DNA of 19,617 nt from Octopus sinensis (lineage: Eukaryota): the NCBI RefSeq assembly GCF_006345805.1, contig NW_021824203.1, positions 1 to 19,617 of the forward strand. The letters are read 5' to 3'. The translations under genes and the position numbers were made by a program. Shown here in pieces: positions 1 to 19,617 of this stretch. Below the pieces are notes generated by a model. That model worked only from the letters and a program-made list of their open reading frames with translations. It searched no databases and had not been told where the DNA came from. The number at the start of each line of letters is the position of its first letter. Within the stretch, counting starts at the first letter, position 1.

Positions 1-54
1 TATGACTTCCACCATTTACCTAGCATCGTTATCATAGTATTATTTATCTAGCTT

Positions 55-124
55 ATGTGCCAAACTATGAGACTGAACCCAAGACCATGTGGTTGAGAAG
101 CAATCTTCTCAGCCACACAGCCAT
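55..124 (-). mobile_element. tRNA-derived SINE, 5' head fragment (degenerate)
   Basis: The reverse complement reads atggctgtgtggctgagaagattgcttctcaaccacatggtcttgggttcagtctc, with an A-box-like TGGCTGTGTGG and a B-box-like GGTTCAGTC(T)C. It resembles octopus SINE heads from memory; no database search was run. Confidence 0.6.
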
Positions 125-175
125 CATTGGGCCTTAATCACACTTGTGCTCTGTGTTATCATATATGATATAAAT

Positions 176-591
176 CATCCGAACGTGGCCGTAGCCAGTA
201 CCGCATAGACTGGCCTCGTTGCTTTGGGGAGTAACAAACACCATCCGATCGTGGCCGTCCGCCAGCCTCATCTGGCACCTGTGTCCGGTGGCACATAAAA
301 ACACCATCCGAGCGTGGCCGTCTGCCAGCCTCGTCTGGCACTGTGTCGGTGGCACATAAAAACACCATCCGAGCGTGGGCGTTCGCCAGCCTCGTCTGGC
401 ACCTGTGTCGGTGGCACATAAAATCCCACTACACTCTCGGAGTGGTTGGCGTTAGGAAGGGCATCCAGCTGTAGAAACACTGCCAGATCTGACTGGCCGT
501 GCAGCTTCGGGCTCCCCAGACCCCAGTTGAACCGTCCAACCCATGCTAGCATGGAAAACGGACGCTAAATGATGATGATGATGATGATGAT
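176..591 (+). mobile_element. SINE body and 3' end with internal tandem repeats and (GAT)n tail
   Basis: Contains ggagtggttggcgttaggaagggcatccagctgtagaaac...ccatgctagcatggaaaacggacgctaaat followed by (gat)7. Related sequence recurs at ~2150-2375 (+) and 6286-6318 (-) within this window. Confidence 0.8.
241..424 (+). repeat. ~60-63 bp tandem repeat, 3 copies plus a degenerate copy at ~176-240, inside the SINE
   Basis: Unit ccatccga(t/g)cgtgg(c/g)cgt..gccagcctc(a/g)tctggcacctgtgt(c)cggtggcacataaaa(aca) starts at ~241, ~304 and ~364. Confidence 0.9.
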
Positions 592-960
592 ATATATAAT
601 TATTTTGAATGAAACATAAATTATTTCCTCTTTTCTATGACATATTTAATTATAGATACCACTTTCTTATTGTTAATAACATTAAAGAATAATCCAAAAA
701 CTAAATGTATGTGTGGATACTGTTTTCTGTTTTTGGTTGGGGTTGTAGCATTGATAGGTGCATGGCAGTAGTGATCATTCATGTCTATGATGATGTGTTT
801 GATTGACAGTATTCAAAGAGGAATCAGATAAAAAATTTAAAAAGAAACAAAAAATGATTGTATGAAAATCATATATTCTATTGGTTAAAATAATTACAGT
901 AATTTAGTGTTACGGACATGCTCTTCTTGTAACTCTAATCTGTTACCATGACCATTTCTG

Positions 961-1063
961 CAACCGAAACCACCACCATTACTACTACCATTGCTACTCC
1001 TCTTCTTACTACTACTACTTCTACCATCAATACTACTACTACCAGTACCTCCACTACCTCTAT

Positions 1064-1098
<35 letters not shown>
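961..1098. repeat. Imperfect (ACT/ACC)n trinucleotide microsatellite
   Basis: Runs of actactact. It produces the poly-Thr, poly-Leu and poly-Ser ORFs in the track, and abuts the 3' end of the minus-strand SINE at ~1119. Confidence 0.9.
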
Positions 1099-1118
1099 AA
1101 AATTTTAAAAACATTAGT

Positions 1119-1316
1119 AACTTTCAAAGTTTGGCACAAGGCCAGCATTTTTAAGGGGAGGAAAAAATGTAAATTACATTCACCCCTATAATTGGTACTT
1201 AATCAAACTTAAAGCAATGAAAAGCAAAGTTGATTCAGGCAAGATTTGAACTCAGAACATAAAGTATGAACAGAAGTATCACTGATCATTTTTTCCATGT
1301 TCTTATAATCCTGCTC
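1119..1316 (-). mobile_element. tRNA-derived SINE, second family, copy 1 (degenerate)
   Basis: tttcaaagtttggcacaaggccagca...aaaagcaaagttgattcaggcaagatttgaactcagaacataaag. B-box-like GAGTTCAAAT on the minus strand at 1244-1253. Confidence 0.65.
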
Positions 1317-1327
1317 TTAATGATAAT

Positions 1328-1528
1328 AGTTTCAACTTTTAGTACTTTTAGTGGGTAGGACAAGTTGATTACATTATCCCTCTACTAAATTAGTATTTTA
1401 TATTATTGACCCCAAAAAGATGAAAGGCAAAGCTGAGTTCAGTGGTATTTGAATTCAGAATGTAGAGCCAGAAGAAATACCACAAAGCTTCTTGTCCAAC
1501 ACAGCAATGATCCTGCCAGCTCATGCCC
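1328..1528 (-). mobile_element. tRNA-derived SINE, second family, copy 2
   Basis: ttattgaccccaaaaagatgaaaggcaaagctgagttcagtggtatttgaattcagaatgtag...cctgccagctc, homologous to copies 1, 3 and 4. Confidence 0.7.
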
Positions 1529-1540
1529 TTATAATAATAA

Positions 1541-1766
1541 GGTTAAATGTCTCAAATTTAAACATAAGGCCAGCAATATTTAGGGGGAGGATAAATCAAT
1601 TATATCGACCCCAGGGTTCAACTAATACTTATTTTATCAAGCCTTCTCCTCCCTCTAAGGATCAAAGGCAGTCAATCTTCACAGAATTTTAACACAACAT
1701 AAAGATGAAGAAAATGCTGCAAAGCATTTTGTCTAGCATACTAATGATTTTTGTCACCTCACTACC
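1541..1766 (-). mobile_element. tRNA-derived SINE, second family, copy 3
   Basis: aaggccagcaatatttagggggaggataaatcaattatatcgaccccagggttcaactaatacttattttatc...aaggatcaaaggcagtcaatc, flanked by (AAT)n on both sides. Confidence 0.65.
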
Positions 1767-1767
1767 T

Positions 1768-1812
1768 TAATAATAATTATTATTATTGTTGTTGTTGTTG
1801 TTGTTGTTGTTA
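1768..1812. repeat. (AAT)/(ATT)/(GTT)n compound microsatellite
   Basis: Read directly: taataataattattattattgttgttgttgttgttgttgtt. Confidence 0.9.
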
Positions 1813-1814
1813 TA

Positions 1815-1945
1815 ATGTCTATCAAATTTTGCACAAGTGCAACAATTTTTGGATTGAGGGGATGAGTCAAGTTGACTTCAGTGGGATTAGAACTCAGAAT
1901 GTAAAGAATTGGAAGCAATACCAAAAAGAATTTAGTTGTATAGTT
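1815..1945 (-). mobile_element. tRNA-derived SINE, second family, copy 4 (internally deleted)
   Basis: tcaaattttgcacaagtgcaacaattttt...ggatgagtcaagttgacttcagtgggattagaactcagaatgtaaag. The segment present between these blocks in copies 2 and 3 is missing. Confidence 0.55.
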
Positions 1946-2149
1946 TCTTTTTTGTTTATGCAACATGTGTAAGGTGGTACGAATTAAATAGTTTATACAC
2001 AAACTTTCTTTTTTTGTCATGTGTATATATTCTGTGACATACCCAACTGTGGATTCCTAACAATGCATGGTTAATAATGTAACTTCTTGTGGTCTCCCAT
2101 TAGATACACACATGGCACAAAACTACCTCCCTCAATACTACTCCCTCCT

Positions 2150-2375
2150 CTGTTGAGGGTTTTGTCTTGTAAAATACTTTGTGATTTCACCAGGGCTGCT
2201 GTCACATAAAAGGCACCTAGTACAGTGTGTAAAGTGGTGAGCATTAAGAAAAGCATCCAGCTGTAGAAGCCATGCCAAAACAGACAGTTGAACTTGGCAC
2301 AGTCTTCTAGCTTACCAGCTTCTAACAAAGCATGTAAGCATTGAAAACAGACTTTAAATGATGAAGTGATGACAT
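2150..2375 (+). mobile_element. Degenerate SINE 3' half, related to the 176-591 element
   Basis: gtcacataaaaggcacctagtacagtgtgtaaagtggtgagcattaagaaaagcatccagctgtagaagcc...gcattgaaaacagactttaaatgatga aligns by eye with 410-591. Confidence 0.65.
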
Positions 2376-2379
2376 AACT

Positions 2380-2449
2380 ATATATCCATGCATACATACA
2401 TACATACATATATATATAATATATATTATATATATATATATATATATTT

Positions 2450-2481
<32 letters not shown>
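2380..2481. repeat. Compound (TACA)n/(TA)n/(GA)n microsatellite
   Basis: Read directly from the sequence. Confidence 0.95.
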
Positions 2482-2489
2482 TTGAGTGA

Positions 2490-3400
2490 AGGAGAAAAGG
2501 AGCAGATCCAACTTACAGAGTGCAAATGACAGAGAAAATTAAAGGGGAGGATAACGTCTAACAGCTGTTCTGGGAGAATGTGGTAGATGTATTCATCACA
2601 GTATGTAGGCCATAATAGAAGGCAATCAGAATTGGATAAATTGAGCTGCCATCAAGAAGTGCAAAGGTGGACAGATTAAATGTGGAGTGCAAGCAGTATG
2701 AGGAGGAAGGAGGTAGGATGGAGTTATGGCGAGTGTTAAGACAGAATGGTGAGAGGAGATAAATAAACTAGTTCAGAAAGAGAGTGGCGGCTTAAGAATG
2801 GAAGTATTAAGGAAGTGGTAGTCGATGTGGAGAGTTGAGAGATGAGTGGGAGGGATGCAGTGGGTAGTAATTGAAGGGTAGTCAATTATTGGGTTGTGTA
2901 TAGTGTTGAGATAGTGAGAAAAGGGATGACAATTATTTGAGGGAGGGAAAGACTCTAATTAGGCAACAGAAGGAGATTACTAAAGTATGAACAAAGATAT
3001 GAGAGAAGATAAAGGGAGGTGCATAGAGTGGGGAGTTAGTCGGTGATAGGGTAGCTGTGGTTAGTACTATAATGAAGGTGGATTGTGGTGGAGGGGGAGT
3101 ACTGAGGTTGCAAAGGTGTATGAAATTGGGTAGAGGGGTGGATGTTGATTGTTTAGTAGCTAATTGATTGTGGTAGTTGCAAGTGCTCTTGATTGAAGGC
3201 GAGAATTGAGACAATGGGGAAAGAATACAATTTGTGAGGGAGGTGGTATGTTGTGGGTAAGAAGAATTTTCAAAGGTAATCATGAGAAGGATGGTATTAC
3301 TGGAGAAGATGCATTGCTTCGCTAACCTTGTTGTACCCCAAGGTTAATTATAATTAATGATAATCATTGTTATGAGATTATATAGATTTAATAAAATGAG
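2490..3400 (-). other. Putative non-coding 3' region (pseudo-LTR-like) of the adjacent Penelope-like element
   Basis: Strongly strand-skewed (G/A-rich on +), lies immediately 3' of the GIY-YIG remnant, and has hammerhead-like motifs at each end. Assignment is inference. Confidence 0.35.
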
Positions 3401-3407
3401 TAAATGA

Positions 3408-4200
3408 TGAGTAGAACCTGTGTTTACAAGAGAGTATTACATCTGAGAATCTATTAAGTAATCAGGGATTGTGGTTGCAAAGGATGATTAGTGATCCCTT
3501 ACAAATACCAAGGTTTGAGCTGAACGAGGGAGCCTCCTTATATGATGGATATAGGATAGAGTAGTTTTGGGATTTGTGGTTATGTATTTAAGTTGCTAAG
3601 GTGGTAGAATATTTAGAATTTGGATTGGAGAAAGAGTCCATTTGTGCTCAGTAGCAGTGCTTGAAATTGACATTCTGTCGTTATAGACCCTTACTTGGTG
3701 GGAGCATAGTATTATTACTCTGCACTTGTAGACTACATTTTTGCATTGACAGAAACCTCCAAGAGGGCTGAATTGAAACACCTAATAATTGCAAGTTTTC
3801 CTACCTACTCTGTGGTCTTCCTACCTGCTCTAGGAAAGAAATGTGCAATTTTTGCCTTAAGTTTAGTGTTGGAGATATAAGAGTTCTTTTTACAGAAACC
3901 ACTTATCTGCTGAGCTTGGTTATAGTGTGGGGCATGATTATTAAAAATATCTTTGTTAGTAGATAAGCTGGAGATTCTGATAAAAATATCTGTGACTATT
4001 CTATTAGGAGTAAGTTTAGGGTAATTTGATAGGATGTAGATATATTGTAATGATTGATAGGGTTTCTAGAAAGGGTGATATAGATTTAAGATGTTTCCAG
4101 TGTGTGTCATTTTCGAATGAGATACCTAGGTTATGATTTTTTAAAATCCTGTGGAATTGATTCCCTGTAAAGGTATGAGTCTAAGTTTGGATCATTTGAG
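3408..4200 (-). pseudogene. Penelope-like retroelement remnant 1: RT C-terminus plus GIY-YIG endonuclease, with frameshifts and stops
   Basis: Manual translation across frames: LSNYPKLTPNRIVTDIFIRISSLSTNKDIFNNHAPHYNQAQQISGF (PLE RT thumb, cf. SNHP..I...I..RIS.LSS...F....P.Y..AL..SGY), KTCNY*VFQFSPLGGFCQCKNVVYKC (cf. CNC..CPL.G.C...VVY), and STTLAT*IH...LLNRFSDVILSCKHR (cf. LLNKRSE..S.C.H). Confidence 0.8.
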
Positions 4201-4250
4201 CACTACTAAGTGTCTTCTAACACTGAAAATCTCTGGACCTCATCTTCTGG

Positions 4251-4258
4251 CTATATAA

Positions 4259-4302
<44 letters not shown>

Positions 4303-4315
4303 GTGTGTGTATATT
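4251..4315. repeat. (TA)n(TG)n microsatellite
   Basis: Read directly from the sequence. Confidence 0.95.
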
Positions 4316-4326
4316 GTGTAAACATA

Positions 4327-5585
4327 CAGGAGTTGGACAAAATAATGGAAACACCTTAAAATTTCAAACAAATTTATTTTAATATGGGGTAGGGCTGCCT
4401 GTAGCAGTAATTACAGCTTGAATTCTACAAGGTATGAACTTGTACAAAGTTTGAATTGTTTCCAAAAGAATTTTTGTCCATTTTTCAGCTAAAAGAGTCC
4501 CCAATTCTTGCAGTGATGATGGTGGAGGGTATTGACTCCTTTTCCTGTTTTCCTAAAATGCACCACAAATGTTCAATAATATTGAGATCTGGAGGCTGTG
4601 GTGGCAAGATAAGATGTTCAACTTCTCTAGAATGTTTCTCATGCCATTCAGTAACAACTTTAGCTGCTCTATGAATTGGTGCATTATCATCCTGAAAGAT
4701 TGCATTTCCCTTCAGAAACAGTTCTGCAATCATAGGATGAATTTGATCAGATAAAATGCTTAAATAGTCTGCCATGAAGGGAAATCATTGGGCTGGCAGA
4801 TTTCCAAGATATAGCCCCCACCTCTCAGATCATCATAGATCCTCCTCCATGTTTAACAGTTGGAAGAGAGGTAGTCTGGGTCAAAGGCTTGTTTTGGATG
4901 TCTCCACATGTATACTCGGCCAGTGGTCAGAAATATGGTAAAAGATGACTTGTCCAAGAAAATGACATTCTTCCACTGCTCTAGGGATCAGTTTTGTAGG
5001 TTTTTACCCCACTCTAAATGCTTTGCAAAGTTGGTTTTTGAAAGTAGTGGTTTTCTGATTGCAGCCCTCCCATGAAATCCAGCTTTGTGCAACTCCCAGC
5101 AATCAGTTTTATGGAAACTGGGTTCTTGAGATGGTTATTAAGCTCTACAGTTACTTTGGGAGCTGTACTTTTGTGATCCTTTCTAACAATTTGCGTAAGA
5201 GTCCAACAGTCCTTATCTGAAGGTTTTGGTTTTCTTCCAGAGTTTTGTTTTGACTAGAAGGTTTTTCCCACTTCCTCAAAGGCTGTCATTACTTTTGAGA
5301 CAGGACTTCATGATACACCAAACACTTCGGCTGTTTTCATTACGCTAGCGCCTGCTATACGCACACACAATTTGACCTCTTTGAAAGTCCAATAGATCTG
5401 TCATTTTAATGAATTTCAGTTAACTTTTTCTGTTGATATCTGAAAAGAAACAGCAATTTTAGCAAAACATATTAAGCAATACTAATAATAATTCAAATAA
5501 CATAAATATAAACAAGCTTTTGACAGTTTTATAGATATTTCAAAATTATGATGCTACATGTTTCCATTATTTTGTCCAACCCCTC
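4327..5585 (-). mobile_element. Full-length Tc1/mariner-superfamily DNA transposon (1259 bp, 27-bp TIRs, TA target duplication)
   Basis: Left TIR 4327-4353 is CAGGAGTTGGACAAAATAATGGAAACA. Right TIR 5559-5585 reverse-complements to GAGGGGTTGGACAAAATAATGGAAACA (2 mismatches). TA lies at 4325-4326 and 5586-5587. Confidence 0.95.
4379..5404 (-). pseudogene. Tc1-like DDE transposase, frameshifted
   Basis: ATG at 5404 (MTDLLDFQRGQIV, HTH start). First catalytic D in NVIFLDKSSF (~4950-4970), then FQDDNAPIH...PPQPPDLNIIEHLW, ending RIQAVITATGSPTPY* at 4379. Several frameshifts; W is replaced by L in the WPPQSPDLN motif. Confidence 0.92.
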
Positions 5586-5589
5586 TAGA

Positions 5590-5988
5590 TCTTCAGATAG
5601 CTGTTCCTGAACAATGGGTGCCCAGAAAAAGAACTGGTATATAAGACCAATAACATGGGTTTGAACAGTAACAAATACATATATTGGAATGATAGGGAAC
5701 TCCTTCAAATAAAGATATACATTGCACCTGGCTTTGTTCAGAGCCAAAAACAAAAAACACACAATAATCCTAGCCAATATAGAATAGAGACTGAAAAAGA
5801 GAGGTGTGAGCAACATCCAGATAACCTGGAGTATTATTGCTGAGGCCAACAAGAACAGAGGACGAGGCAGGAAATGCAAGCTTTACATCACTGAAACATT
5901 ATACATTATCACACCAAAAGTGAATATTTCAAATATTAGGGATGACACCTTCTCCCCTTGCATGCATAAGCAGCATTTCACACTCTGA
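5590..5988 (+). pseudogene. Penelope-like retroelement remnant 2: GIY-YIG endonuclease C-terminus
   Basis: LNNGCPEKELVYK, then (frameshift) TYIGMIGNSFK*RYTLH...RLKKRGVSNIQITWSIIAEA...KCKLYITETLYII...NIRDDTFSPCMHKQHFTL*. This carries the VY-YIG-R-H pattern and the C-terminal C..C..E...N.R......C.H pattern. Confidence 0.8.
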
Positions 5989-6228
5989 AATTTCAAGCAA
6001 ATATCCCCACCTACTCTGTCTCCCGTGCAACCTGGATAAATTTTCATTCCAAACATCAGTTATACGCATTATATGAACTTCATGAAAAAAACACATGACC
6101 TCATAAACTTATGCTGCGCTCCTCTCACAGATATATATGGGTCTCACACATATCCATGACATTACAAGTTATATACAAACTTATGAACCCATAACACCAT
6201 AAGTATCACATGAATTATGTGAAAGATA

Positions 6229-6278
<50 letters not shown>

Positions 6279-6749
6279 ATATATATCATCATCATCGTTT
6301 AACGTCCGCTTTCCATGCGGTGTGAGAGCAACATCCAGATAACCTGGAGTATTATTGCTGAGGCCAACAAGAACAGAGGACGAGGCAGGAAATGCAAGCT
6401 TTACATCACTGAAACATTATACATTATCACACCAAAAGTGAATATTTCAAATATTAGGGATGACACCTTCTCCCCTTGCATGCATAAGCAGCATTTCACA
6501 CTCTGAAATTTCAAGCAAATATCCCCACCTACTCTGTCTCCGTGCAACCTGGATAAATTTTCATTCCAAACATCAGTTATACGCATTATATGAACTTCAT
6601 GCATGAAAAAACACATGACCTCATAAACTTATGCTGCGCTCCTCTCACAGATATATATGGGTCTCACACATATCCATGACATTACAAGTTATATACAAAC
6701 TTATGAACCCATAACACCATAAGTATCACATGAATTATGTGAAAGATAT
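5803..6749 (+). repeat. Near-identical direct repeat: 5803-6229 and 6319-6749, with an 89-bp spacer
   Basis: Both copies run from ggtgtga..gcaacatccagataacc to gaattatgtgaaagatat. I noticed only small indels (ga, c, catg/poly-A). Confidence 0.95.
6286..6318 (-). mobile_element. Extreme 3' end of a SINE with (GAT)n and (AT)n tail
   Basis: The reverse complement gcatggaaagcggacgttaaacgatgatgatga matches 549-581 (gcatggaaaacggacgctaaatgatgatgatga) with 3 mismatches. It is preceded on + by a (TA)n tract at 6230-6285. Confidence 0.85.
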
Positions 6750-6879
6750 GTGAAACGTCACAATAATGAGTACACACCCAAACAGACATACTACAGATCC
6801 AGAGTTTGCACCCACTGACGGCTGCAGCGAAATTCAATTTTGGACTTTCTTCTATCGAAGGCATTCTAACAAAAATGCT

Positions 6880-7124
6880 TCCGTATAAATGGTGAAAATA
6901 TTGTCAGTTTTTGTTTCACTTCTAACACGTAATACTGAAATAGTGGAGAAGATATGATATTGCTATGGGCTCGCCTTAAACAAGAAGTCGAACGTTTTTT
7001 TGATCATGAAAGTACATGGACCCTAAGCAAGGCATGTGTGAAATTTGAATGAAATTGGTTGTGTAGTTCTCACGTTTTAGGGGAACACACAGACAGACAC
7101 ATTCTCAGTTTTATATATATATAG
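6880..7124 (+). mobile_element. Possible non-autonomous Helitron-type element 3' end
   Basis: Ends tgtgaaatttgaatgaaattggttgtgtagttctcacgttttagggaacacacagacagacacattctcagttttatatatatatag. This resembles the aaattt..aaatcgg...acagacagac...tatatag termini of small invertebrate Helitron derivatives, recognised from memory only. Confidence 0.35.
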
Positions 7125-7179
7125 AAATTTATATATATATATATATATTTTTATATATATTATATATATATAAATAAAA

Positions 7180-7218
<39 letters not shown>

Positions 7219-7247
7219 TATATATTATATATATTTATATATATATA

Positions 7248-7294
<47 letters not shown>

Positions 7295-7343
7295 ATATAT
7301 TTTATATATTATATATATATATTATATATATATATATTATATT

Positions 7344-7378
<35 letters not shown>

Positions 7379-7625
7379 ATATTTTTATATATATATATAT
7401 ATATTTTATATATATATATATATTTTTATATATATATTTATATATATATATATATTTTTATATATATATATATATATTTTTATATATATATATATATATT
7501 TTTATATATATATATATATATATTTTTATATATATATATTATATATATATATATATTTTTATTATATATATATATTTTTTATATTATATATATATATAAT
7601 TTTTATATATATATATATATATATA

Positions 7626-7658
<33 letters not shown>

Positions 7659-7670
7659 TTTTATATATAT
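7111..7670. repeat. ~550-bp interrupted (TA)n microsatellite
   Basis: Almost pure A/T, with (TA)n blocks periodically interrupted by TTTTT. Confidence 0.97.
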
Positions 7671-8787
7671 AACTTAACTTAGAATAACTTAGAAAGGTTT
7701 TTGGCCAGTATTGGCCCAGGCCATGTCTAACTTAATAGCACCACCTGGCGAAGTCTTTCAGTTCAGGATTTGGGCACCAAGGCCCATTCGAGCAGAGAGT
7801 TATTGTTTGCGGAGACATATCCGGGTGTGGGTGGTTTGTCCGGTACTGTTTGAAGGAATTTGTCCAAAGACTTCTTGAATTTTGTGTGGTCAGTTTCTTT
7901 TTTGACGTGTCCTGGTGTAATGTTGAAGAGAGCGGGTCCAATTGAGGTGAAATAGTTGTGCCGTATTGTCGTTATGTGATGCGATTTAGATTTTTGTTGT
8001 GGACGGATGGCACGTGGTCCAAGCCTTGGATGCATTTTGAAGGTGATGCCAACATCATTCGGACAGTGCTGATGGAATATTTTCCACATCATACAGATAA
8101 TGTAGCGTTCACGGCGTCGTTGGAGTGAATACAATTTCAGCTTCTCTAGTCTACCCCAGTAGTCAAGGTCTAACATGCCATCTATCTTTTTTGTGATTGA
8201 CCTTTGGGGAGCTTCAATTCTCATAATATTTTGTTTTGTGTAGGGAGACCACAGTGGACAGCAGTATTCAAGGTGGGGTCGGGCAAAAGTGGAGAAGAGA
8301 AGGATAATAGCGTGGGAATCTCTCGACTGGAAGGTTCTGAGAATCCAGGAACACATTCTGCGGGCCATGTCAACTTTGCTGCTTATATGTGTAGCCCAGC
8401 TTATGTTGTTGTCCACTGTTACTCCAGGTCTCTGATGTTGTTGGATGCCATGAGAATTTCTCCAGAAGGAAGAGAGTATGGGAGTTTCAGAGCGTCCTCC
8501 CTTCCAAAGTGGATCAGTTCGAATTTGTCTTCATTTAGCAACATGTTATTCTTTTCCGCCCATTGGACAACAGCCAGTAGGTCTGACTGAAGGTTTATTC
8601 GGTCATCCACGCCATTGATGACCTTCTGGAGCTTGGAATCATCAGCGAAGGTTCTGATGTTGCTGTGTTTGATGGTGTCAGTAATATCATTTATGTAGAT
8701 GATGAAGAGAAGTGGGCCCAACACAGTGCCTTGTGGGACACCACTGCTGACTTTGGCTGGGCTGGATTTGACTCCTTCGACTACAAC
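7671..8787 (-). mobile_element. 5'-truncated non-LTR retrotransposon (CR1-group LINE) with intact 3' end
   Basis: RT motifs, a short 3' UTR with GC-rich self-complementary segment (tggcctgggccaatactggcca), and a short tandem tail (ttctaagtta)2 agtt abutting the (TA)n tract. Confidence 0.9.
7763..8787 (-). pseudogene. LINE ORF2 C-terminal third (RT domains 4-7 plus C-terminal region), one frameshift at ~8425
   Basis: SGVPQGTVLGPLLFIIYINDI, FADDSKL (YADD-type active site), RPHLEYCCPLWSPY, RLEKLKLYSLQRRRERY, FKKSLDKFL. At ~8425 GACCTGGAGTAACAGTGGAC lacks one G relative to DLGVTVD. Confidence 0.92.
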
Positions 8788-11700
8788 AGGAAGAATGGAA
8801 GTTTTGAAGAATGCAGTGCTCAGACAATTAACAACTGATGCCGGCAGTTTGTTCCATGCTTGCGTGTGTATGGAGGGGAGGAAATCAGGTGTAGTGTTGG
8901 CGAATCTCAGGAAGGATGGAAGTTTTGAAGGATGCAGTGCTGCAACCACTAACAACTGATGCCGGCAGTTTGTTCCATGCTTGAGTGTGTATGGAGGGGA
9001 GGAAATCAGGTGTAGTGTTGGTGAATCTCAGGAAGAATGGAAGTTTTGAAGGATGCAGTGCTCAGACAATTAACAACTGATGCCGGCAGTTTGTTCCATG
9101 CTTGAGTGTGTATGGAGGGGAGGAAATCAGGTGTAGTGTTGGTGAATCTCAGGAAGAATGGAAGTTTTGAAGAATGCAGTGCTCAGACAATTAACAACTG
9201 ATGCCGGCAGTTTGTTCCATGCTTGCGTGTGTATGGAGGGGAGGAAATCAGGTGTAGTGTTGGCGAATCTCAGGAAGAATGGAAGTTTTGAAGGATGCAG
9301 TGCTGCAACCACTAACAACTGATGCCGGCAGTTTGTTCCATGCTTGAGTGTGTATGGAGGGGAGGAAATCAGGTGTAGTGTTGGTGAATCTCAGGAAGAA
9401 TGGAAGTTTTGAAGGATGCAGTGCTCAGACAATTAACAACTGATGCCGGCAGTTTGTTCTATGCTTGAGTGTGTATGGAGGGGAGGAAATCAGGTGTAGT
9501 TTTGGTGAATCTCAGGAAGAATGGAAGTTTTGAAGGATGCAGTGCTCAGACAATTAACAACTGATGCCGGCAGTTTGTTCCATGCTTGAGTGTGTATGGA
9601 GGGGAGGAAATCAGGTGTAGTGTTGGTGAATCTCAGGAAGAATGGAAGTTTTGAATGATGCAGTGCTCAGACAATTAACAACTGATGCCGGCAGTTTGTT
9701 CCATGCTTGAGTGTGTATGGAGGGGAGGAAATCAGGTGTAGTGTTGGCGAATCTCAGGAAGCATGGAAGTTTTGAAGGATGCAGTGCTCCGACAACTAAC
9801 AACTGATGCCGGCAGTTTGTTCCATGCATCAGCGTGTGTATGGAGGGGAGAAGATCAGGTGTAGTGTTGACGAATCTCAGGAAGCATGGAAGTTTTGAAG
9901 GATGCAGTGCTCCGACAACTAACAACTGATGCCGGCAGTTTGTTCCGTGCTTGCGTGTGTATGGAGGGGAGAAAATCAGGTGTAGTGTTGGCGAATCTCA
10001 GAAAGCATGAAAGTTTTGAAGGATGCAGTGCTCCGACAACTAACAACTGATGCCGGCAGTTTGTTCCGTGCTTGCGTGTGTATGGAGGGGAGAAAATCAG
10101 GTGTAGTGTTGCCGAATCTCAGGAAGCATGGAAGTTTTGAAGGATGCAGTGCTCAGACAAGTAACAACTGATGCCGGCAGTTTGTTCCATGCTTGCGTGT
10201 GTATGGAGGGGAGAAAATCAGGTGTAGTGTTGCCGAATCTCAGGAATCATGGACGTTTTGAAGGATGCAGTGCTCCGACAACTAACAACTGATGCCGGCA
10301 GTTTGTTCCATGCTTGCGTGTGTATGGAGGGGAGGAAATCAGGTGTAGTGTTGGCGAATCTCAGAAAGCATGAAAGTTTTGAAGGATGCAGTGCTCCGAC
10401 AACTAACAACTGATGCCGGCAGTTTGTTCCATGCTTGCGTGTGTATGGAGGGGAGAAGATCAGGTGTAGTGTTGCCGAATCTCAGGAAGCATGGACGTTT
10501 TGAAGGATGCAGTGCTCCGACAACTAACAACTGATGCCGGCAGTTTGTTCCATGCTTGCGTGTGTATGGAGGGGAGGAAATCAGGTGTAGTGTTGGCGAA
10601 TCTCAGAAAGCATGAAAGTTTTGAAGGATGCAGTGCTCCGACAACTAACAACTGATGCCGGCAGTTTGTTCCATGCTTGCGTGTGTATGGAGGGGAGAAG
10701 ATCAGGTGTAGTGTTGCCGAATCTCAGGAAGCATGGACGTTTTGAAGGATGCAGTGCTCAGACAAGTAACAACTGATGCCGGCAGTTTGTTCCATGCTTG
10801 CGTGTGTATGGAGGGGAGGAGAAAATCAGGTGTAGTGTTGCCGAATCTCAGGAAGCATGGACGTTTTGAAGGATGCAGTGCTCCGACTAACAACTGATGC
10901 CGGCAGTTTGTTCCATGCTTGCGTGTGTATGGAGGGGAGGAATCAGGTGTAGTGTTGGCGAATCTCAGAAAGCATGGAAGTTTTGAAGGATGCAGTGCTC
11001 CGACAACAAACAACTGATGCCGGCAGTTTGTTCCATGCTTGCGTGTGTATGGAGGGGAGAAGATCAGGTGTAGTGTTGCCGAATCTCAGGAAGCATGGAC
11101 GTTTTGAAGGATGCAGTGCTCCGACAACTAACAACTGATGCCGGCAGTTTGTTCCATGCTTGCGTGTGTATGGAGGGGAGAAAATCAGGTGTAGTGTTGG
11201 CGAATCTCAGGAAGCATGGAAGTTTTGAAGGATGCAGTGCTCAGACAATTAACAACTGATGCCGGCAGTTTGTTCCATGCTTGCGTGTGTATGGAGGGGA
11301 GAATCAGGTGTAGTGTTGCCGAATCTCAGGAAGCATGGAAGTTTTGAAGGATGCAGTGCTCAGACAACTAACAACTGATGCCGGCAGTTTGTTCCATGCT
11401 TGCGTGTGTATGGAGGGGAGAAAATCAGGTGTAGTGTTGGCGAATCTCAGGAAGCATGGACGTTTTGAAGGATGCAGTGCTCCGACAACTAACAACTGAT
11501 GCCGGCAGTTTGTTCCATGCTTGCGTGTGTATGGAGGGGAGGAAATCAGGTGTAGTGTTGGTGAATCTCAGGAAGAATGGAAGTTTTGAAGGATGCAGTG
11601 CTGCAACAACAAACAACTGATGCCGGCAGTTTGTTCCATGCTTGCGTGTGTATGGAGGGGAGGAAATCAGGTGTAGTGTTGGTGAATCTCAGGAAGAATG

Positions 11701-14700
11701 GAAGTTTTGAAGGATGCAGTGCTCAGACAATTAACAACTGATGCCGGCAGTTTGTTCCATGCTTGCGTGTGTATGGAGGGAGGGGAGGAAATAGGTGTAG
11801 TGTTGGTGAATCTCAGGAAGAATGGAAGTTTTGAAGGATGCAGTGCTGCAACCACTAACAACTGATGCCGGCAGTTTGTTCCATGCTTGAGTGTGTATGG
11901 AGGGGAGGAAATCAGGTGTAGTGTTGGTGAATCTCAGGAAGGATGGAAGTTTTGAAGGATGCAGTGCTCAGACAATTAACAACTGATGCCGGCAGTTTGT
12001 TCCATGCTTGAGTGTGTATGGAGGGGAGGAAATCAGGTGTAGTGTTGGTGAATCTCAGGAAGGATGGAAGTTTTGAAGGATGCAGTGCTCAGACAATTAA
12101 CAACTGATGCCGGCAGTTTGTTCCATGCTTGAGTGTGTATGGAGGGGAGGAAATCAGGTGTAGTGTTGGTGAATCTCAGGAAGAATGGAAGTTTTGAAGG
12201 ATGCAGTGCTGCAACAACAAACAACTGATGCCGGCAGTTTGTTCCATGCTTGCGTGTGTATGGAGGGGAGGAAATCAGGTGTAGTGTTGGTGAATCTCAG
12301 GAAGAATGGAAGTTTTGAAGGATGCAGTGCTCAGACAATTAACAACTGATGCCGGCAGTTTGTTCCATGCTTGCGTGTGTATGGAGGGGAGGAAATCAGG
12401 TGTAGTGTTGGCGAATCTCAGGAAGCATGGAAGTTTTGAAGGATGCAGTGCTCCGACAACTAACAACTGATGCCGGCAGTTTGTTCCATGCATCAGCGTG
12501 TGTATGGAGGGGAGAAGATCAGGTGTAGTGTTGACGAATCTCAGGAAGCATGGAAGTTTTGAAGGATGCAGTGCTCCGACAACTAACAACTGATGCCGGC
12601 AGTTTGTTCCGTGCTTGCGTGTGTATGGAGGGGAGAAAATCAGGTGTAGTGTTGGCGAATCTCAGAAAGCATGAAAGTTTTGAAGGATGCAGTGCTCCGA
12701 CAACTAACAACTGATGCCGGCAGTTTGTTCCGTGCTTGCGTGTGTATGGAGGGGAGAAAATCAGGTGTAGTGTTGCCGAATCTCAGGAAGCATGGAAGTT
12801 TTGAAGGATGCAGTGCTCAGACAAGTAACAACTGATGCCGGCAGTTTGTTCCATGCTTGCGTGTGTATGGAGGGGAGAAAATCAGGTGTAGTGTTGCCGA
12901 ATCTCAGGAAGCATGGACGTTTTGAAGGATGCAGTGCTCCGACAACTAACAACTGATGCCGGCAGTTTGTTCCATGCTTGCGTGTGTATGGAGGGGAGGA
13001 TATCAGGTGTAGTGTTGGCGAATCTCAGAAAGCATGGAAGTTTTGAAGGATGCAGTGCTCCGACAACTAACAACTGATGCCGGCAGTTTGTTCCATGCTT
13101 GCGTGTGTATGGAGGGGAGAAGATCAGGTGTAGTGTTGCCGAATCTCAGGAAGCATGGACGTTTTGAAGGATGCAGTGCTCAGACAAGTAACAACTGATG
13201 CCGGCAGTTTGTTCCATGCTTGCGTGTGTATGGAGGGGAGAAAATCAGGTGTAGTGTTGCCGAATCTCAGGAAGCATGGACGTTTTGAAGGATGCAGTGC
13301 TCCGACAACTAACAACTGATGCCGGCAGTTTGTTCCATGCTTGCGTGTGTATGGAGGGGAGGATATCAGGTGTAGTGTTGGCGAATCTCAGAAAGCATGG
13401 AAGTTTTGAAGGATGCAGTGCTCCGACAACTAACAACTGATGCCGGCAGTTTGTTCCATGCTTGCGTGTGTATGGAGGGGAGAAGATCAGGTGTAGTGTT
13501 GCCGAATCTCAGGAAGCATGGACGTTTTGAAGGATACAGTGCTCCGACAACTAACAACTGATGCCGGCAGTTTGTTCCATGCTTGCGTGTGTATGGAGGG
13601 GTGAAAATCAGGTGTAGTGTTGGCGAATCTCAGGAAGCATGGAAGTTTTGAAGGATGCAGTGCTCAGACAATTAACAACTGATGCCGGCAGTTTGTTCCA
13701 TGCTTGCGTGTGTATGGAGGGGAGAAATCAGGTGTAGTGTTGCCGAATCTCAGGAAGCATGGAAGTTTTGAAGGATGCAGTGCTCAGACAACTAACAACT
13801 GATGCCGGCAGTTTGTTCCATGCTGGCGTGTGTATGGAGGGGAGAAAATCAGGTGTAGTGTTGGCGAATCTCAGGAAGCATGGACGTTTTGAAGGATGCA
13901 GTGCTCCGACAACTAACAACTGATGCCGGCAGTTTGTTCCATGCTTGCGTGTGTATGGAGGGGAGGAAATCAGGTGTAGTGTTGGTGAATCTCAGGAAGA
14001 ATGGAAGTTTTGAAGGATGCAGTGCTGCAACAACAAACAACTGATGCCGGCAGTTTGTTCCATGCTTGCGTGTGTATGGAGGGGAGGAAATCAGGTGTAG
14101 TGTTGGTGAATCTCAGGAAGAATGGAAGTTTTGAAGGATGCAGTGCTCAGACAATTAACAACTGATGCCGGCAGTTTGTTCCATGCTTGCGTGTGTATGG
14201 AGGGGAGGAAATCAGGTGTAGTGTTGGTGAATCTCAGGAAGAATGGAAGTTTTGAAGGATGCAGTGCTGCAACCACTAACAACTGATGCCGGCAGTTTGT
14301 TCCATGCTTGAGTGTGTATGGAGGGGAGGAAATCAGGTGTAGTGTTGGTGAATCTCAGGAAGGATGGAAGTTTTGAAGGATGCAGTGCTCAGACAATTAA
14401 CAACTGATGCCGGCAGTTTGTTCCATGCTTGAGTGTGTATGGAGGGGAGGAAATCAGGTGTAGTGTTGGTGAATCTCAGGAAGGATGGAAGTTTTGAAGG
14501 ATGCAGTGCTCAGACAATTAACAACTGATGCCGGCAGTTTGTTCCATGCTTGAGTGTGTATGGAGGGGAGGAAATCAGGTGTAGTGTTGGTGAATCTCAG
14601 GAAGAATGGAAGTTTTGAAGGATGCAGTGCTCAGACAATTAACAACTGATGCCGGCAGTTTGTTCCATGCTTGCGTGTGTATGGAGGGGAGGAAATCAGG

Positions 14701-17700
14701 TGTAGTGTTGGTGAATCTCAGGAAGGATGGAAGTTTTGAAGGATGCAGTGCTCAGACAATTAACAACTGATGCCGGCAGTTTGTTCCATGCTTGCGTGTG
14801 TATGGAGGGGAGGAAATCAGGTGTAGTGTTGGTGAATCTCAGGAAGGATGGAAGTTTTGAAGGAACCAGTGCTCAGACAATTAACAACTGATGCCGGCAG
14901 TTTGGGCAGTTTGTTCCATGCTGGTGTGTATGGAGGGGAGGAATCAGGGTAGTGTTGGTGAATCTCAGGAAGGATGGAAGTTTTGAAGGATGCAGTGCTC
15001 AGACAATTAACAACTGATGCCGGCAGTTTGTTCCATGCTTGCGTGTGTATGGAGGGGAGAAAATCAGGTGTAGTGTTGGTGAATCTCAGGAAGAATGGAA
15101 GTTTTGAAGGATGCAGTGCTCAGACAATTAACAACTGATGCCGGCAGTTTGTTCCATGCTTGAGTGTGTATGGAGGGGAGGAAATCAGGTGTAGTGTTGG
15201 TGAATCTCAGGAAGAATGGAGTTTTGTTTGAAGGATGCAGTGCTGCAACCACTAACAACTGATGCCGGCAGTTTGTTCCATGCTTGAGTGTGTATGGAGG
15301 GGAGGAAATCAGGTGTAGTGTTGGTGAATCTCAGGAAGAATGGAAGTTTTGAAGGATGCAGTGCTGCAACCACTAACAACTGATGCCGGCAGTTTGTTCC
15401 ATGCTTGCGTGTGTATGGAGGGGAGGAAATCAGGTGTAGTGTTGGTGAATCTCAGGAAGAATGGAAGTTTTGAAGGATGCAGTGCTCAGACAATTAACAA
15501 CTGATGCCGGCAGTTTGTTCCATGCTTGCGTGTGTATGGAGGGGAGGAAATCAGGTGTAGTGTTGGTGAATCTCAGGAAGAATGGAAGTTTTGAAGGATG
15601 CAGTGCTGCAACCACTAACAACTGATGCCGGCAGTTTGTTCCATGCTTGAGTGTGTATGGAGGGGAGGAAATCAGGTGTAGTGTTGGTGAATCTCAGGAA
15701 GGATGGAAGTTTTGAAGGATGCAGTGCTCAGACAATTAACAACTGATGCCGGCAGTTTGTTCCATGCTTGCGTGTGTATGGAGGGGAGGAGGAAATCAGG
15801 TGTAGGTTTGGAATCAGGAAGAATGGAAGTTTTGAAGGATGCAGTGCTCAGACAATTAACAACTGATGCCGGCAGTTTGTTCCATGCTTGAGTGTGTATG
15901 GAGGGGAGGAAATCAGGTGTAGTGTTGGTGAATCTCAGGAAGAATGGAAGTTTTGAAGGATGCAGTGCTCAGACAATTAACAACTGATGGGCCGGTTTGT
16001 TCCATGCTTGAGTGTATGGAGGGGAGGGGAAGGAAATCAGGTGTAGTGTTGGTGAATCTCAGGAAGAATGGAAGTTTTGAAGGATGCAGTGCTGCAACCA
16101 CTAACAACTGATGCCGGCAGTTTGTTCCATGCTTGAGTGTGTATGGAGGGGAGGAAATCAGGTGTAGTGTTGGTGAATCTCAGGAAGAATGGAAGTTTTG
16201 AATGATGCAGTGCTCAGACAATTAACAACTGATGCCGGCAGTTTGTTCCATGCTTGCGTATGGTGTATGGAGGAGGAGGAAAATCAGATGATGTGTCATG
16301 TTGTTGTGTGAAGTGTTGGGTCTCAGGAAGGATGGAAGTTTTGAAGGATGCAGTGCTCAGACAATTAACAACTGATGCCGGCAGTTTGTTCCATGCTTGA
16401 GTGTGTATGGAGGGGAGGAATCAGGTGTAGTGTTGGTGAATCTCAGGAAGAAGAAGGAAGTTTTGAAGGATGCAGTGCTCAGACAATTGACAACTGATGC
16501 CGGCAGTTTGTTCCATGCTTGAGTGTGTATGGAGGGGAGGAAATCAGGTGTAGTGTTGGCGAATCTCAGGAAGGATGGAAGTTTTGAAGGATGCAGTGCT
16601 CAGACAATTAACAACTGATGCCGGCAGTTTGTTCCATGCTTGAGTGTGTATGGAGGGGAGGAGGAAATCAGGTGTAGTGTTGGTGAATCTCAGGAAGAAT
16701 GGAAGTTTTGAAGGATGCAGTGCTGCAACCACTAATAACTGATGCCCAGGCAGTTTGTTCCATGCTGGAGGTGTGAGGAGAGGGAGGAAATCAGGTGTGT
16801 AGTGTTGGTGAATCTCAGGAAGAATGGAAGTTTTGAAGGATGCAGTGCTCAGACAATTAACAACTGATGCCGGCAGTTTGTTCCATGCTTGCGTGTGTAT
16901 GGAGGGGAGGAAATCAGGTGTAGTGTTGGTGAATCTCAGGAAGGATGGAAGTTTTGAAGGAAGATGCAGTGCTCAGACATTAACAACTGATGCCGGCAGT
17001 TTGTTCCATGCTTGAGTGTGTATGGAGGGGAGGAAATCAGGTGTAGTGTTGGTGAATCTCAGGAGAATGGAAGTTTTGAAGGATGCAGTGCTCAGACAAT
17101 TAACAACTGATGCCGGCAGTTTGTTCCATGCTTGAGTGTGTATGGAGGGGAGGAAATCAGGTGTAGTGTTGGCGAATCTCAGGAAGGATGGAAGTTTTGA
17201 AGAATGCAGTGCTCAGACAATTAACAACTGATGCCGGCAGTTTGTTCCATGCTTGCCTGTGTATGGAGGGGAGGAAATCAGGTGTAGTGTTGGTGAATCT
17301 CAGGAAGAATGGAAGTTTTGAAGAATGCAGTGCTCAGACAATTAACAACTGATGCCGGCAGTTTGTTCCATGCTTGCGTGTGTATGGAGGGGAGGAAATC
17401 ATGTGTAGTGTTGGCGAATCTCAGGAAGGATGGAAGTTTTGAAGGATGCAGTGCTGCAACCACTAACAACTGATGCCGGCAGCAGTTTGTTCATGCTTGA
17501 GTGTGTATGGAGGGGAGGAAATCAGGTGTAGTGTTGGTGAATCTCAGGAAGAATGGAAGTTTTGAAGGATGCAGTGCTCAGACAATTAACAACTGATGCG
17601 GCAGTGTTTGTTCCATGCTTGAGTGTGTATGGAGGGGAGGAAATCAGGTGTAGTGTTGGTGAATCTCAGGAAGAATGGAAGTTTTGAAGGATGCAGTGCT

Positions 17701-19558
17701 CAGACAATTAACAACTGATGCCGGCAGTTTGTTCCATGCTTGCGTGTGTATGGAGGGGAGGAAATCAGGTGTAGTGTTGGTGAATCTCAGGAAGGATGGA
17801 AGTTTTGAAGGATGCAGTGCTGCAACCACTAACAACTGATGCCGGCAGTTTGTTCCATGCTTGAGTGTGTATGGAGGGGAGGAAATCAGGTGTAGTGTTG
17901 GTGAATCTCAGGAAGAATGGAAGTTTTGAAGGATGCAGTGCTCAGACAATTAACAACTGATGCCGGCAGTTGTTCCATGCTTGAGTGTGTATGGAGGGGA
18001 GGAAATCAGGTGTAGTTTTGGTGAATCTCAGGAAGAATGGAAGTTTTGAAGGATGCAGTGCTCAGACAATTAACAACTGATGCCGGCAGTTTGTTCCATG
18101 CTTGAGTGTGTTTGGAGGGGAGGAAATCAGGTGTAGTGTTGGTGAATCTCAGGAAGAATGGAAGTTTTGAAGGATGCAGTGCTCAGACAATTAACAACTG
18201 ATGCCGGCAGTTTGTTCCATGCTTGAGTGTGTATGGAGGGGAGGAAATCAGGTGTAATGTTGGCGAATCTCAGGAAGCATGGAAGTTTTGAAGGATGCAG
18301 TGCTCCGACAACTAACAACTGATGCCGGCAGTTTGTTCCATGCATCAGCGTGTGTATGGAGGGGAGAAGATCAGGTGTAGTGTTGACGAATCTCAGGAAG
18401 CATGGAAGTTTTGAAGGATGCAGTGCTCCGACAACTAACAACTGATGCCGGCAGTTTGTTCCGTGCTGGCGTGTGTATGGAGGGGAGAAAATCAGGTGTA
18501 GTGTTGGCGAATCTCAGAAAGCATGAAAGTTTTGAAGGATGCAGTGCTCCGACAACTAACAACTGATGCCGGCAGTTTGTTCCGTGCTTGCGTGTGTATG
18601 GAGGGGAGAAAATCAGGTGTAGTGTTGGCGAATCTCAGGAAGCATGGAAGTTTTGAAGGATGCAGTGCTCAGACAAGTAACAACTGATGCCGGCAGTTTG
18701 TTCCATGCTTGCGTGTGTATGGAGGGGAGAAAATCAGGTGTAGTGTTGCCGAATCTCAGGAAGCATGGACGTTTTTGAAGGATGCAGTGCTCCGACAACT
18801 AACAACTGATGCCGGCAGTTTGTTCCATGCTTGCGTGTGTATGGAGGGGAGGATATCAGGTGTAGTGTTGGCGAATCTCAGAAAGCATGGAAGTTTTGAA
18901 GGATGCAGTGCTCAGACAATTAACAACTGATGCCGGCAGTTTGTTCCATGCTTGCGTGTGTATGGAGGGGAGAAGATCAGGTGTAGTGTTGCCGAATCTC
19001 AGGAAGCATGGACGTTTTGAAGGATACAGTGCTCCGACAACTAACAACTGATGCCGGCAGTTTGTTCCATGCTTGTGTGTGTATGGAGGGGTGAAAATCA
19101 GGTGTAGTGTTGGCGAATCTCAGGAAGCATGGAAGTTTTGAAGGATGCATTGCTCAGACAATTAACAACTGATGCCGGCAGTTTGTTCCATGCTTGCGTG
19201 TGTATGGAGGGGAGAAAATCAGGTGTAGTGTTTGCGAATCTCAGGAAGCATGGAAATTTTGAAGGATGCAGTGCTCAGACAACTAACAACTGATGCCGGC
19301 AGTTTGTTCCATGCTGGCGTGTGTATGGAGGGGAGAAAATCAGGTGTAGTGTTGGCGAATCTCAGGAAGCATGGACGTTTTGAAGGATGCAGTGCTCCGA
19401 CAACTAACAACTGATGCCGGCAGTTTGTTCCATGCTTGCGTGTGTATGGAGGGGAGGATATCAGGTGTAGTGTTGGCGAATCTCAGAAAGCATGGATGTT
19501 TTGAAGGATGCAGTGCCCCAACAACTAATAACTGATGCCGGCAGTTTGTTCCATGCTT
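8788..19558. repeat. 121-bp tandem satellite array, ~89 units, derived from a LINE 3' end
   Basis: Unit on +: caggaag(a/c/g)atggaagttttgaaggatgcagtgctc(a/c)gacaa(t/c)taacaactgatgccggcagtttgttccatgcttg(c/a)gtgtgtatggaggggag(g/a)aaatcaggtgtagtgttgg(t/c)gaatct. ORF starts recur at multiples of 121; 10771/121 is about 89. Confidence 0.98.
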
Positions 19559-19617
19559 CAGCAAGTCTCAGCGTGAAAAATTATATCGGAAATGAATAAG
19601 AGAAAATTAACTTGGTG
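19450..19617 (-). pseudogene. C-terminus of ORF2 of a second CR1/L2-group LINE (parent of the satellite), continuing beyond the window
   Basis: The minus strand reads cgatataatttttcacgctgagacttgctgaagcatggaacaaactgccggca, i.e. RYNF(F)TLRLAEAWNKLPASVISC.GTASFK after restoring 1 nt. This matches the canonical R.NFF..RV...WN.LP..VV......FK LINE terminus. Confidence 0.75.

Follow-up and report, generated by a model that had tools for sequence, protein, structure and literature searches.

A 121-bp satellite array in Octopus sinensis and its probable origin from the 3′ end of a CR1-like LINE

The stretch of DNA analysed here, called the window in the following, comprises 19,617 nucleotides of Octopus sinensis (NCBI RefSeq assembly GCF_006345805.1, contig NW_021824203.1, positions 1 to 19,617, forward strand) and contains a long tandem array of a 121-bp unit. 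With a probability of roughly 70% we regard this array as non-coding satellite DNA from the 3′ end of an octopus family of CR1-like long interspersed nuclear elements (LINEs). The family whose open reading frame 2 (ORF2) tail matches the unit is given the working name LINE-A. The array is a clean new example of a known route of satellite origin and not a new kind of element.

The array was delimited by Tandem Repeats Finder (TRF) and subsequently by our own chopping of the minus strand against the consensus.

8787-19558, minus strand: satellite array; TRF period 121, 88.6 copies, 94% matches, score 17989; a single array

Chopping yielded 88 full units and one terminal unit of 73 nt (8859-8787), 89 in total, in a block of about 10.8 kb. 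Most of the chopped units are 121 nt long, with a range of 113-143 nt. The minus-strand consensus unit is made up of AWNKLPASVVSCLSTASFKTSMLPEIRQHYT, the stop TGA and 28 further nt, corresponding to the motif AWNKLPASVV..FKTS.LPEI.QHYT, a stop and 28 nt; each unit consists of the last 31 codons of LINE-A ORF2, the TGA stop and 28 nt of 3′ untranslated region (UTR). A 31-nt probe taken from the unit found 81 matches in the window, every one of them within the array, with 0 expected from shuffles. A 121-bp tandem array with a minus-strand ORF and stop had been proposed in the initial annotation of this DNA and is borne out by both TRF and unit chopping. The unit peptide given there, the ..SCRS.. 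variant, is exact in 10 units but is not the commonest, which is ..NCLS..SILPEIHQHYT with 17 units.

Of the 88 full units, 71 have all 31 codons and the stop intact, and 17 have broken frames. A coding reading of the array is nevertheless ruled out by the stops in each unit, which the consensus places in all three sense frames, and by the lack of codon-position bias: variability amounts to 0.024, 0.058 and 0.043 at the three codon positions and to 0.054 in the non-coding part. Since an excess at the third codon position is absent, nothing is maintained as protein in the array. The units are under no coding constraint, and the array is explicable without any function. Rfam at gathering thresholds gave no match anywhere in the window.

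The progenitor family was identified with phmmer, using a 48-aa flank-plus-unit peptide as query against 1.84 billion representative proteins. A word-indexed protein search with the same peptide gave 0 matches, so that the exhaustive HMMER search was needed. Of the 21 phmmer matches, the top five (P0157-P0161) are 72-88% identical to the query (E 2e-14 to 1e-10) and match its residues 5-48 as a single stretch, with flank and unit contiguous, at the C-terminus of CR1-like ORF2 tails. The match in P0157 is located at the extreme C-terminus of a typical ORF2 tail following the reverse transcriptase (RT), ..RPHLEFASPVWNPY..VQRRATRRI..SERLAALGMDSLKLRR..TRGHAYKVRKQHCSRDFRKHFFTLRIAETWNKLPASVVGCRSTESFKASMLPVVRRHYT. 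A search with P0157 revealed named relatives in Octopus sinensis and O. vulgaris, one of which is annotated at source as 'RNA-directed DNA polymerase from mobile element jockey-like'. In P0181 from O. vulgaris, the last 31 residues are identical to the ..SCRS.. (G-type) unit peptide of the window.

The ORF2 C-terminal motif ..FF..R....WN.LP..V....S...FK..L is present in the LINE-A tail, and a profile built from 120 LINE ORF2 tails scored flank plus unit with 20.4 bits, compared to 7.3 bits for the best of 1000 shuffles. P0180, a LINE-A tail of O. sinensis, aligns colinearly (E=2e-21) to residues 75-253 of an RT-bearing ORF2, that of LINE-B, an unrelated LINE at the left edge of the array that is described below. 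The longest LINE-A pieces, P0180 (241 aa) and P0185 (199 aa), extend only to the last RT block and obtain no score from Pfam RVT_1. Pfam holds no model of the ORF2 tail, and the unit peptide and the LINE-A tails are without matches there. The earlier proposal of an ORF2 C-terminus of a CR1/L2-group LINE followed by stop and proximal 3′UTR is thus supported by phmmer, by the tail profile and by the colinearity with an RT-bearing ORF2. Judged by sequence similarity, LINE-A can be placed in the CR1/L2 group as far as the tail is concerned, and the clade label derives from tail similarity only.

From their appearance we take the weaker phmmer matches to be avian-type CR1 tails. In P0163, P0165-P0170, P0173, P0175 and P0177 these tails are present twice per predicted ORF, a single protein reading through CR1 3′ ends that are in tandem or nested.

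LINE-A was compared at seven loci, namely the window and L002-L007. L002 belongs to O. vulgaris (GCA_951406725.2, according to the literature the reference assembly of this species; record OX597841.1) and was reached via P0160, L003-L005 are ENA contigs, and L006 is from O. sinensis (compared by tBLASTN and by eye). The unit occurs once per LINE-A copy in copies 1 and 2 and a third fragment of L002 as well as in L003, L004, L005 and L006, with 78-97% identity between the unit and these dispersed tails. The three LINE-A tails in L002 are 5′-truncated, as is every LINE-A copy observed, and their units share 88-97% identity with the consensus of the window. In the dispersed copies the flank FFTLRVAE and the unit are contiguous and occur once, at the ORF2 C-terminus. 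In contigs that reach far enough, the unit leads on into a conserved 3′UTR of about 170 nt and then an (ATT)n tail (L002 16990-17010, minus strand; L004 3200-3228). At family level, dispersed Octopus copies therefore hold the unit once and preceded by the flank sequence, the arrangement that the initial annotation had named as support for an origin from a LINE.

The unit boundaries coincide with a short direct repeat that is already present in the dispersed element. In copy 2 of L002, the best-preserved dispersed copy, AAGCATG is found at 10693 and 10814, a spacing of exactly 121 bp. The first AAGCATG lies within the codons Glu-Ala-Trp and the second in the 3′UTR, the bracketing repeat being (G)AAGCATG. 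Past the second heptamer the dispersed element runs on as TATCTGACTCATAC..., whereas the array restarts at GAACAAACTG.... The scan of unit junctions in the window located the first boundary heptamer and found AAGCATGG at 74 unit junctions, e.g. at 19431-19437.

19552-19558, minus strand: first boundary heptamer AAGCATG (codons E-A-W)

The junction sequence specific to the satellite is ACACGCAAGCATGGAACAAACTGCC, that of the dispersed copies AAGCATGTATCTGAC. JGI metagenome contigs scanned with the satellite-specific junction 25-mer gave 0 matches, which is uninformative on octopus genomes.

By our own calculation, 7 nt would match by chance at a given boundary with a probability of about 6e-5 (4^-7). 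Flanking direct repeats of 5-10 bp are an established route to tandem repeats derived from transposable elements (TEs), with a modal length of 7 bp in human (PMC3389668), and the same paper describes the models of minisatellite birth by Haber & Louis 1998 and Taylor & Breden 2000. A single-copy segment bracketed by direct repeats is the classical substrate for such a birth, and we infer that the first duplication went via the heptamers: a misaligned AAGCATG pair would have produced it, either by replication slippage or by unequal exchange. The octopus case resembles these models in that a single-copy segment flanked by 5-10-bp (modally 7-bp) repeats is duplicated and the terminal unit is incomplete. 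The incomplete terminal unit of the octopus array is, however, explained by a junction with another LINE and not by slippage geometry. Human TE-derived tandem repeats (PMC3389668) mostly have two to a few units, in contrast to the 89 units and 10.8 kb observed here.

The same junctions bear on a different origin, the one modelled by McGurk and Barbash, in which amplification would have started from at least two 5′-truncated LINE-A copies inserted head-to-tail. In Drosophila, LINE tandems that join a tail to an internal position are frequent (PMC5932611), and several of the avian-type CR1 matches carry two tails per ORF. This route, however, does not fit, because an intact 3′ end should then meet a truncated 5′ end at the junctions, whereas the distal UTR and the tail are missing at all junctions. 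The units are joined internal-to-internal and end 28 nt past the stop, the remaining UTR of about 140 nt and (ATT)n are absent from every junction, and there is no target-site duplication between units. An origin by double insertion is ruled out by this junction structure, and we give it next to no weight. What the octopus array shares with the tandems of PMC5932611 is that a TE provides the seed and unequal exchange the expansion; it differs in that its seed junction is internal-to-internal within one element.

At the right edge, the first unit is preceded by a short non-repeated piece of LINE-A:

19559-19582, minus strand: non-repeated LINE-A ORF2 stub, just upstream of the first unit; 22/24 nt identical to O. 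vulgaris LINE-A copies
19583-19617, minus strand: flank without recognisable LINE-A; holds 'RYN' codons and a TAA stop

The stub sequence AATTTTTCACGCTGAGACTTGCTG encodes (F)FTLRLAE, compared to FFTLRVAE in the dispersed copies. Its local alignment to LINE-A spans 29 nt, and the similarity may reach 19588. Further out, the sequence 19583-19617 reached a local score of only 12 against 226 nt of LINE-A upstream sequence, with a shuffle mean of 16.7, and an ungapped anchored match of 15/36, while the codons HDF(R/W)KHFF at that upstream position are kept even in cross-species LINE-A copies. With the distal 35 nt below shuffled controls, the 'RYN' codons are ruled out as LINE sequence. The right flank had been read as RYNF(F)TLRLAE and taken for a preserved parent flank over 19559-19617. 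The letters are as stated, but RYNF and FTLRLAE lie in different frames because one T is missing, and a TAA stop follows a few codons upstream. Likewise, the proximal 24-29 nt or so are indeed LINE-A, but the distal 35 nt including 'RYN' are not. Since these 35 nt are unlike LINE-A, the window shows a stub and not an attached LINE body. All observed LINE-A copies being strongly 5′-truncated, a short, dead-on-arrival progenitor is the simplest reading. The parent of the window array was probably a short, severely 5′-truncated LINE-A fragment, and no RT domain is expected directly past 19617.

The mean pairwise identity of the units in the window array is 92.3%. Their variation is concentrated at a few diagnostic sites that define several subtypes. 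Blocks of 7-10 successive units reappear 70, 48, 22 and 20 units away with about 99% identity, which is the mark left by an exchange of multi-unit blocks out of register. The array structure shows that unequal crossing-over, in part with a shift of many units, enlarged the array to 89 units and produced its subtypes. The ..SCRS.. type is ancestral, because it is the same as in the dispersed element; units of this type adjoin the LINE-A stub.

12371-12491, minus strand: representative G-type (ancestral-type) unit u59; with 95.9% identity the closest window unit to dispersed O. vulgaris LINE-A

On the basis of such identities (95.9% for the best unit against a dispersed copy) the array appears young relative to the LINE-A family, but not newborn. 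It had been described as a satellite caught at birth, which does not agree with 92% mean unit identity, several subtypes, duplicated multi-unit blocks and a far end that is truncated and capped by a LINE.

A second array was found in O. vulgaris (L007, record CATOCA020000001.1, reached via P0185). Here at least 550 nt of LINE-A tail (6115-6664) lead into 6.9 copies of the 121-bp unit (6665-7495). The identity of these copies to units of the window reaches 98%, and their first junctions have kept the reading ..CACACGCTGAAGCATGG. L007, and not the window, is the array copy still attached to its LINE. Since L007 holds a second array, the 121-bp satellite is not confined to the window locus, and the notion of a one-off event in situ has to be given up. 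The L007 array ends within a unit, at about position 111, and abuts a 5′-truncated member of a third LINE family on the same strand (LINE-C), which has an (AACT)n tail, so that the composite spans 6115-7890. It is bracketed on both sides by TTACTAC (7 nt), a match equalled by 1.3% of random 12-mers; a target-site duplication is possible.

The existence of L007 bears on the possibility that the window array is an assembly artefact, i.e. a short tandem repeat inflated or mis-joined by the assembler. A 100% identical tandem duplication of about 520 bp elsewhere in the window would be in line with such an error. The units of the array, however, differ at many sites and by indels (113-143 nt) and form ordered subtypes and block duplications, and the independent O. 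vulgaris assembly contains a 6.9-copy array of the same 121-bp unit. We therefore consider an artefact very improbable.

Further, the units could be the intrinsic 3′ tail of a mobile LINE-A subfamily, the array arriving with each insertion by priming inside the repeats. The arrays of the window and of L007 do begin at the same point of the LINE-A tail, and both are without the normal distal UTR. Against this, every other LINE-A copy observed has one unit, and the single-unit copies carry the conserved UTR and (ATT)n where the sequence reaches. In addition, an insertion of LINE-A plus array into LINE-C should have left the missing 5′ part of LINE-C upstream of LINE-A in L007, but the DNA there is different. 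An intrinsic tail is accordingly improbable.

The left edge of the window array has a layout similar to the end of the L007 array:

8787-8859, minus strand: terminal truncated unit (unit positions 1-73) with a direct, in-frame join to LINE-B
7763-8786, minus strand: LINE-B, a 5′-truncated, unrelated LINE from mid-RT to the ORF2 C-terminus; RVT_1 match
7672-7762, minus strand: LINE-B 3′UTR, adjoining a TA-rich tract
7112-7671, minus strand: TA-rich microsatellite of 560 bp, directly after the LINE-B 3′UTR

A chimeric ORF (8419-8955, 178 aa) crosses the junction between the satellite unit and the RT of LINE-B. LINE-B matches Pfam RVT_1 over profile positions 111-205 of 205 (E=1.9e-10) and has a C-terminus of a different type, ..FKKSLDKFLQTVPDKPPTPGY... 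Apart from the 5′ truncation and one frameshift near 8440 it is nearly intact, and it has 6167 homologues, the best with 54-71% identity. The 560-bp TA-rich tract may be an expanded LINE-B tail or a pre-existing target. On its downstream side the window array is without the rest of the LINE-A 3′UTR; neither this nor a further part of the array was found when looked for beyond LINE-B (window 1-7100).

A junction of this type was also observed between two dispersed copies. L002 contains at 10139-10960 two LINE-A tails on the same strand and 385 bp apart, in which the UTR of copy 1 is cut 9 nt past the second AAGCATG and joined to the 5′-truncated start of copy 2; it is the same type of junction, internal to a 5′-truncated LINE, as at both arrays. 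In the window, in L007 and at the join of the two L002 copies, the LINE-A 3′ region breaks off within the unit or within the proximal UTR, and all three ends are joined to a 5′-truncated LINE on the same strand, with the missing remainder not found downstream.

These ends weigh against an amplification of LINE-A DNA in place as the sole process. Growth in situ predicts about 140 nt of UTR and (ATT)n downstream of the array, and both are absent at the window and L007. Because both arrays end inside a unit against a 5′-truncated LINE, a model with DNA processes only needs an extra insertion-plus-deletion per locus. Moreover, a mere 24-29 nt connect the window array to its LINE-A flank, and the heptamer microhomology suits a template jump of the RT as well as it does slippage of DNA.

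Such jumps form the core of an origin or spread coupled to retrotransposition, in which an RT copying the RNA of another LINE (LINE-B, or LINE-C in L007) switches onto LINE-A or array RNA and perhaps also jumps from one AAGCATG site to the other. One insertion event would leave behind a part of LINE-A, the units and the other, 5′-truncated LINE, and later unequal exchange would enlarge the array. If true, it would account for the common layout, for the lack of the distal LINE-A UTR in both arrays and for the bracketing of L007. It is in accordance with the layout shared by the three loci, with the failure to find the missing LINE-A remainder beyond the downstream LINE at any of them, and with TTACTAC on both sides of the whole L007 composite, as good a match as in 1.3% of random 12-mers. 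Yet the loci are three only, the 7-nt TTACTAC adjoins an (ACT)n run and could be due to chance, and the composite of the window is without a detectable duplication of this kind. The acceptor positions would also be internal to the LINE-A RNA and not at its 3′ end, which to our knowledge is not the usual form of template jumping by LINEs. Finally, jumps alone cannot plausibly yield 89 units. We consider a retrotransposition-coupled origin unlikely, although to be taken seriously, and keep to the duplication and unequal exchange of a LINE-A segment as the preferred explanation. The recurrent junction with 5′-truncated LINEs is the sole feature of the array that might lead somewhere new.

According to literature, satellites derived from LINEs are established, and a review (PMC9659126) lists chicken HinfI, the common cetacean satellite and Drosophila 18HT. 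Chicken HinfI (SCR1) consists of CR1 3′UTR and partial ORF2 (Li & Leung 2006, as tabulated in PMC9659126). Similar to the octopus array, it is a tandem repeat from the 3′UTR and part of the ORF2 coding region of a CR1-type LINE. The two differ in their hosts, bird and octopus, and are unrelated in sequence; furthermore, the octopus unit has just 121 bp and boundaries that map to a heptamer direct repeat. The monomers of the common cetacean satellite (L1 3′ end), of other L1-derived satellites (PROsat, Pvc20) and of Drosophila 18HT (HeT-A 3′ region) are likewise homologous to a 3′-terminal or ORF2 part of a non-long terminal repeat retrotransposon (PMC9659126). They belong to other LINE clades and hosts and are old, abundant and without a preserved progenitor flank, whereas the octopus satellite keeps a progenitor stub and a LINE-attached 7-copy intermediate. 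In the literature searched, including a recent repeat-annotation paper on O. vulgaris, no description of an octopus or cephalopod satellite was found, which is not proof of absence.

TE-derived satellites are thus well known, yet the seeding step is seldom visible. Across two Octopus species four stages can be seen here: the progenitor, the 7-bp direct repeats, the LINE-attached 7-copy intermediate and the 89-copy array with block duplications. Together they illustrate the birth and growth of a satellite in one compact example. For annotation the result is of practical use, since masking would otherwise treat the array as about 89 fragments of a LINE.

An unrelated array of similar derivation was noticed in a eukaryotic contig (L008, ENA ERZ26696836, 5099-6368). 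Its 71-bp unit is repeated 18 times and encodes the same ORF2-tail motif, ..SFFHRTTKEWNSLP.., of another LINE, and the last unit runs into the true ORF2 C-terminus. Hence the tail region of LINEs has acted as a seed of tandem arrays on more than one occasion.

Outside the satellite, the window shows a strong excess of G over C on the plus strand between 2000 and 4000, with a GC skew of up to 0.59; no ORF or Pfam match accounts for this excess. The tandem duplication of about 520 bp mentioned above comprises 5804-6229 and 6322-6749, with 220 and 144 nt at 100% and 69 nt at 96% identity and an (AT)n tract (6226-6286) at the end of the first copy; it either arose very recently or is an artefact of assembly. 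At 4485-4775 on the minus strand lies part of a Tc1/mariner-type transposase (Pfam DDE_3, E=9.8e-9). A dispersed repeat at 172-583, without a match in Rfam, may be a short interspersed nuclear element. It includes a 61-bp sequence repeated three times in tandem (236-423) and occurs twice in L002 (2323-2727 and, inverted, 19619-19840) with 79-84% identity.

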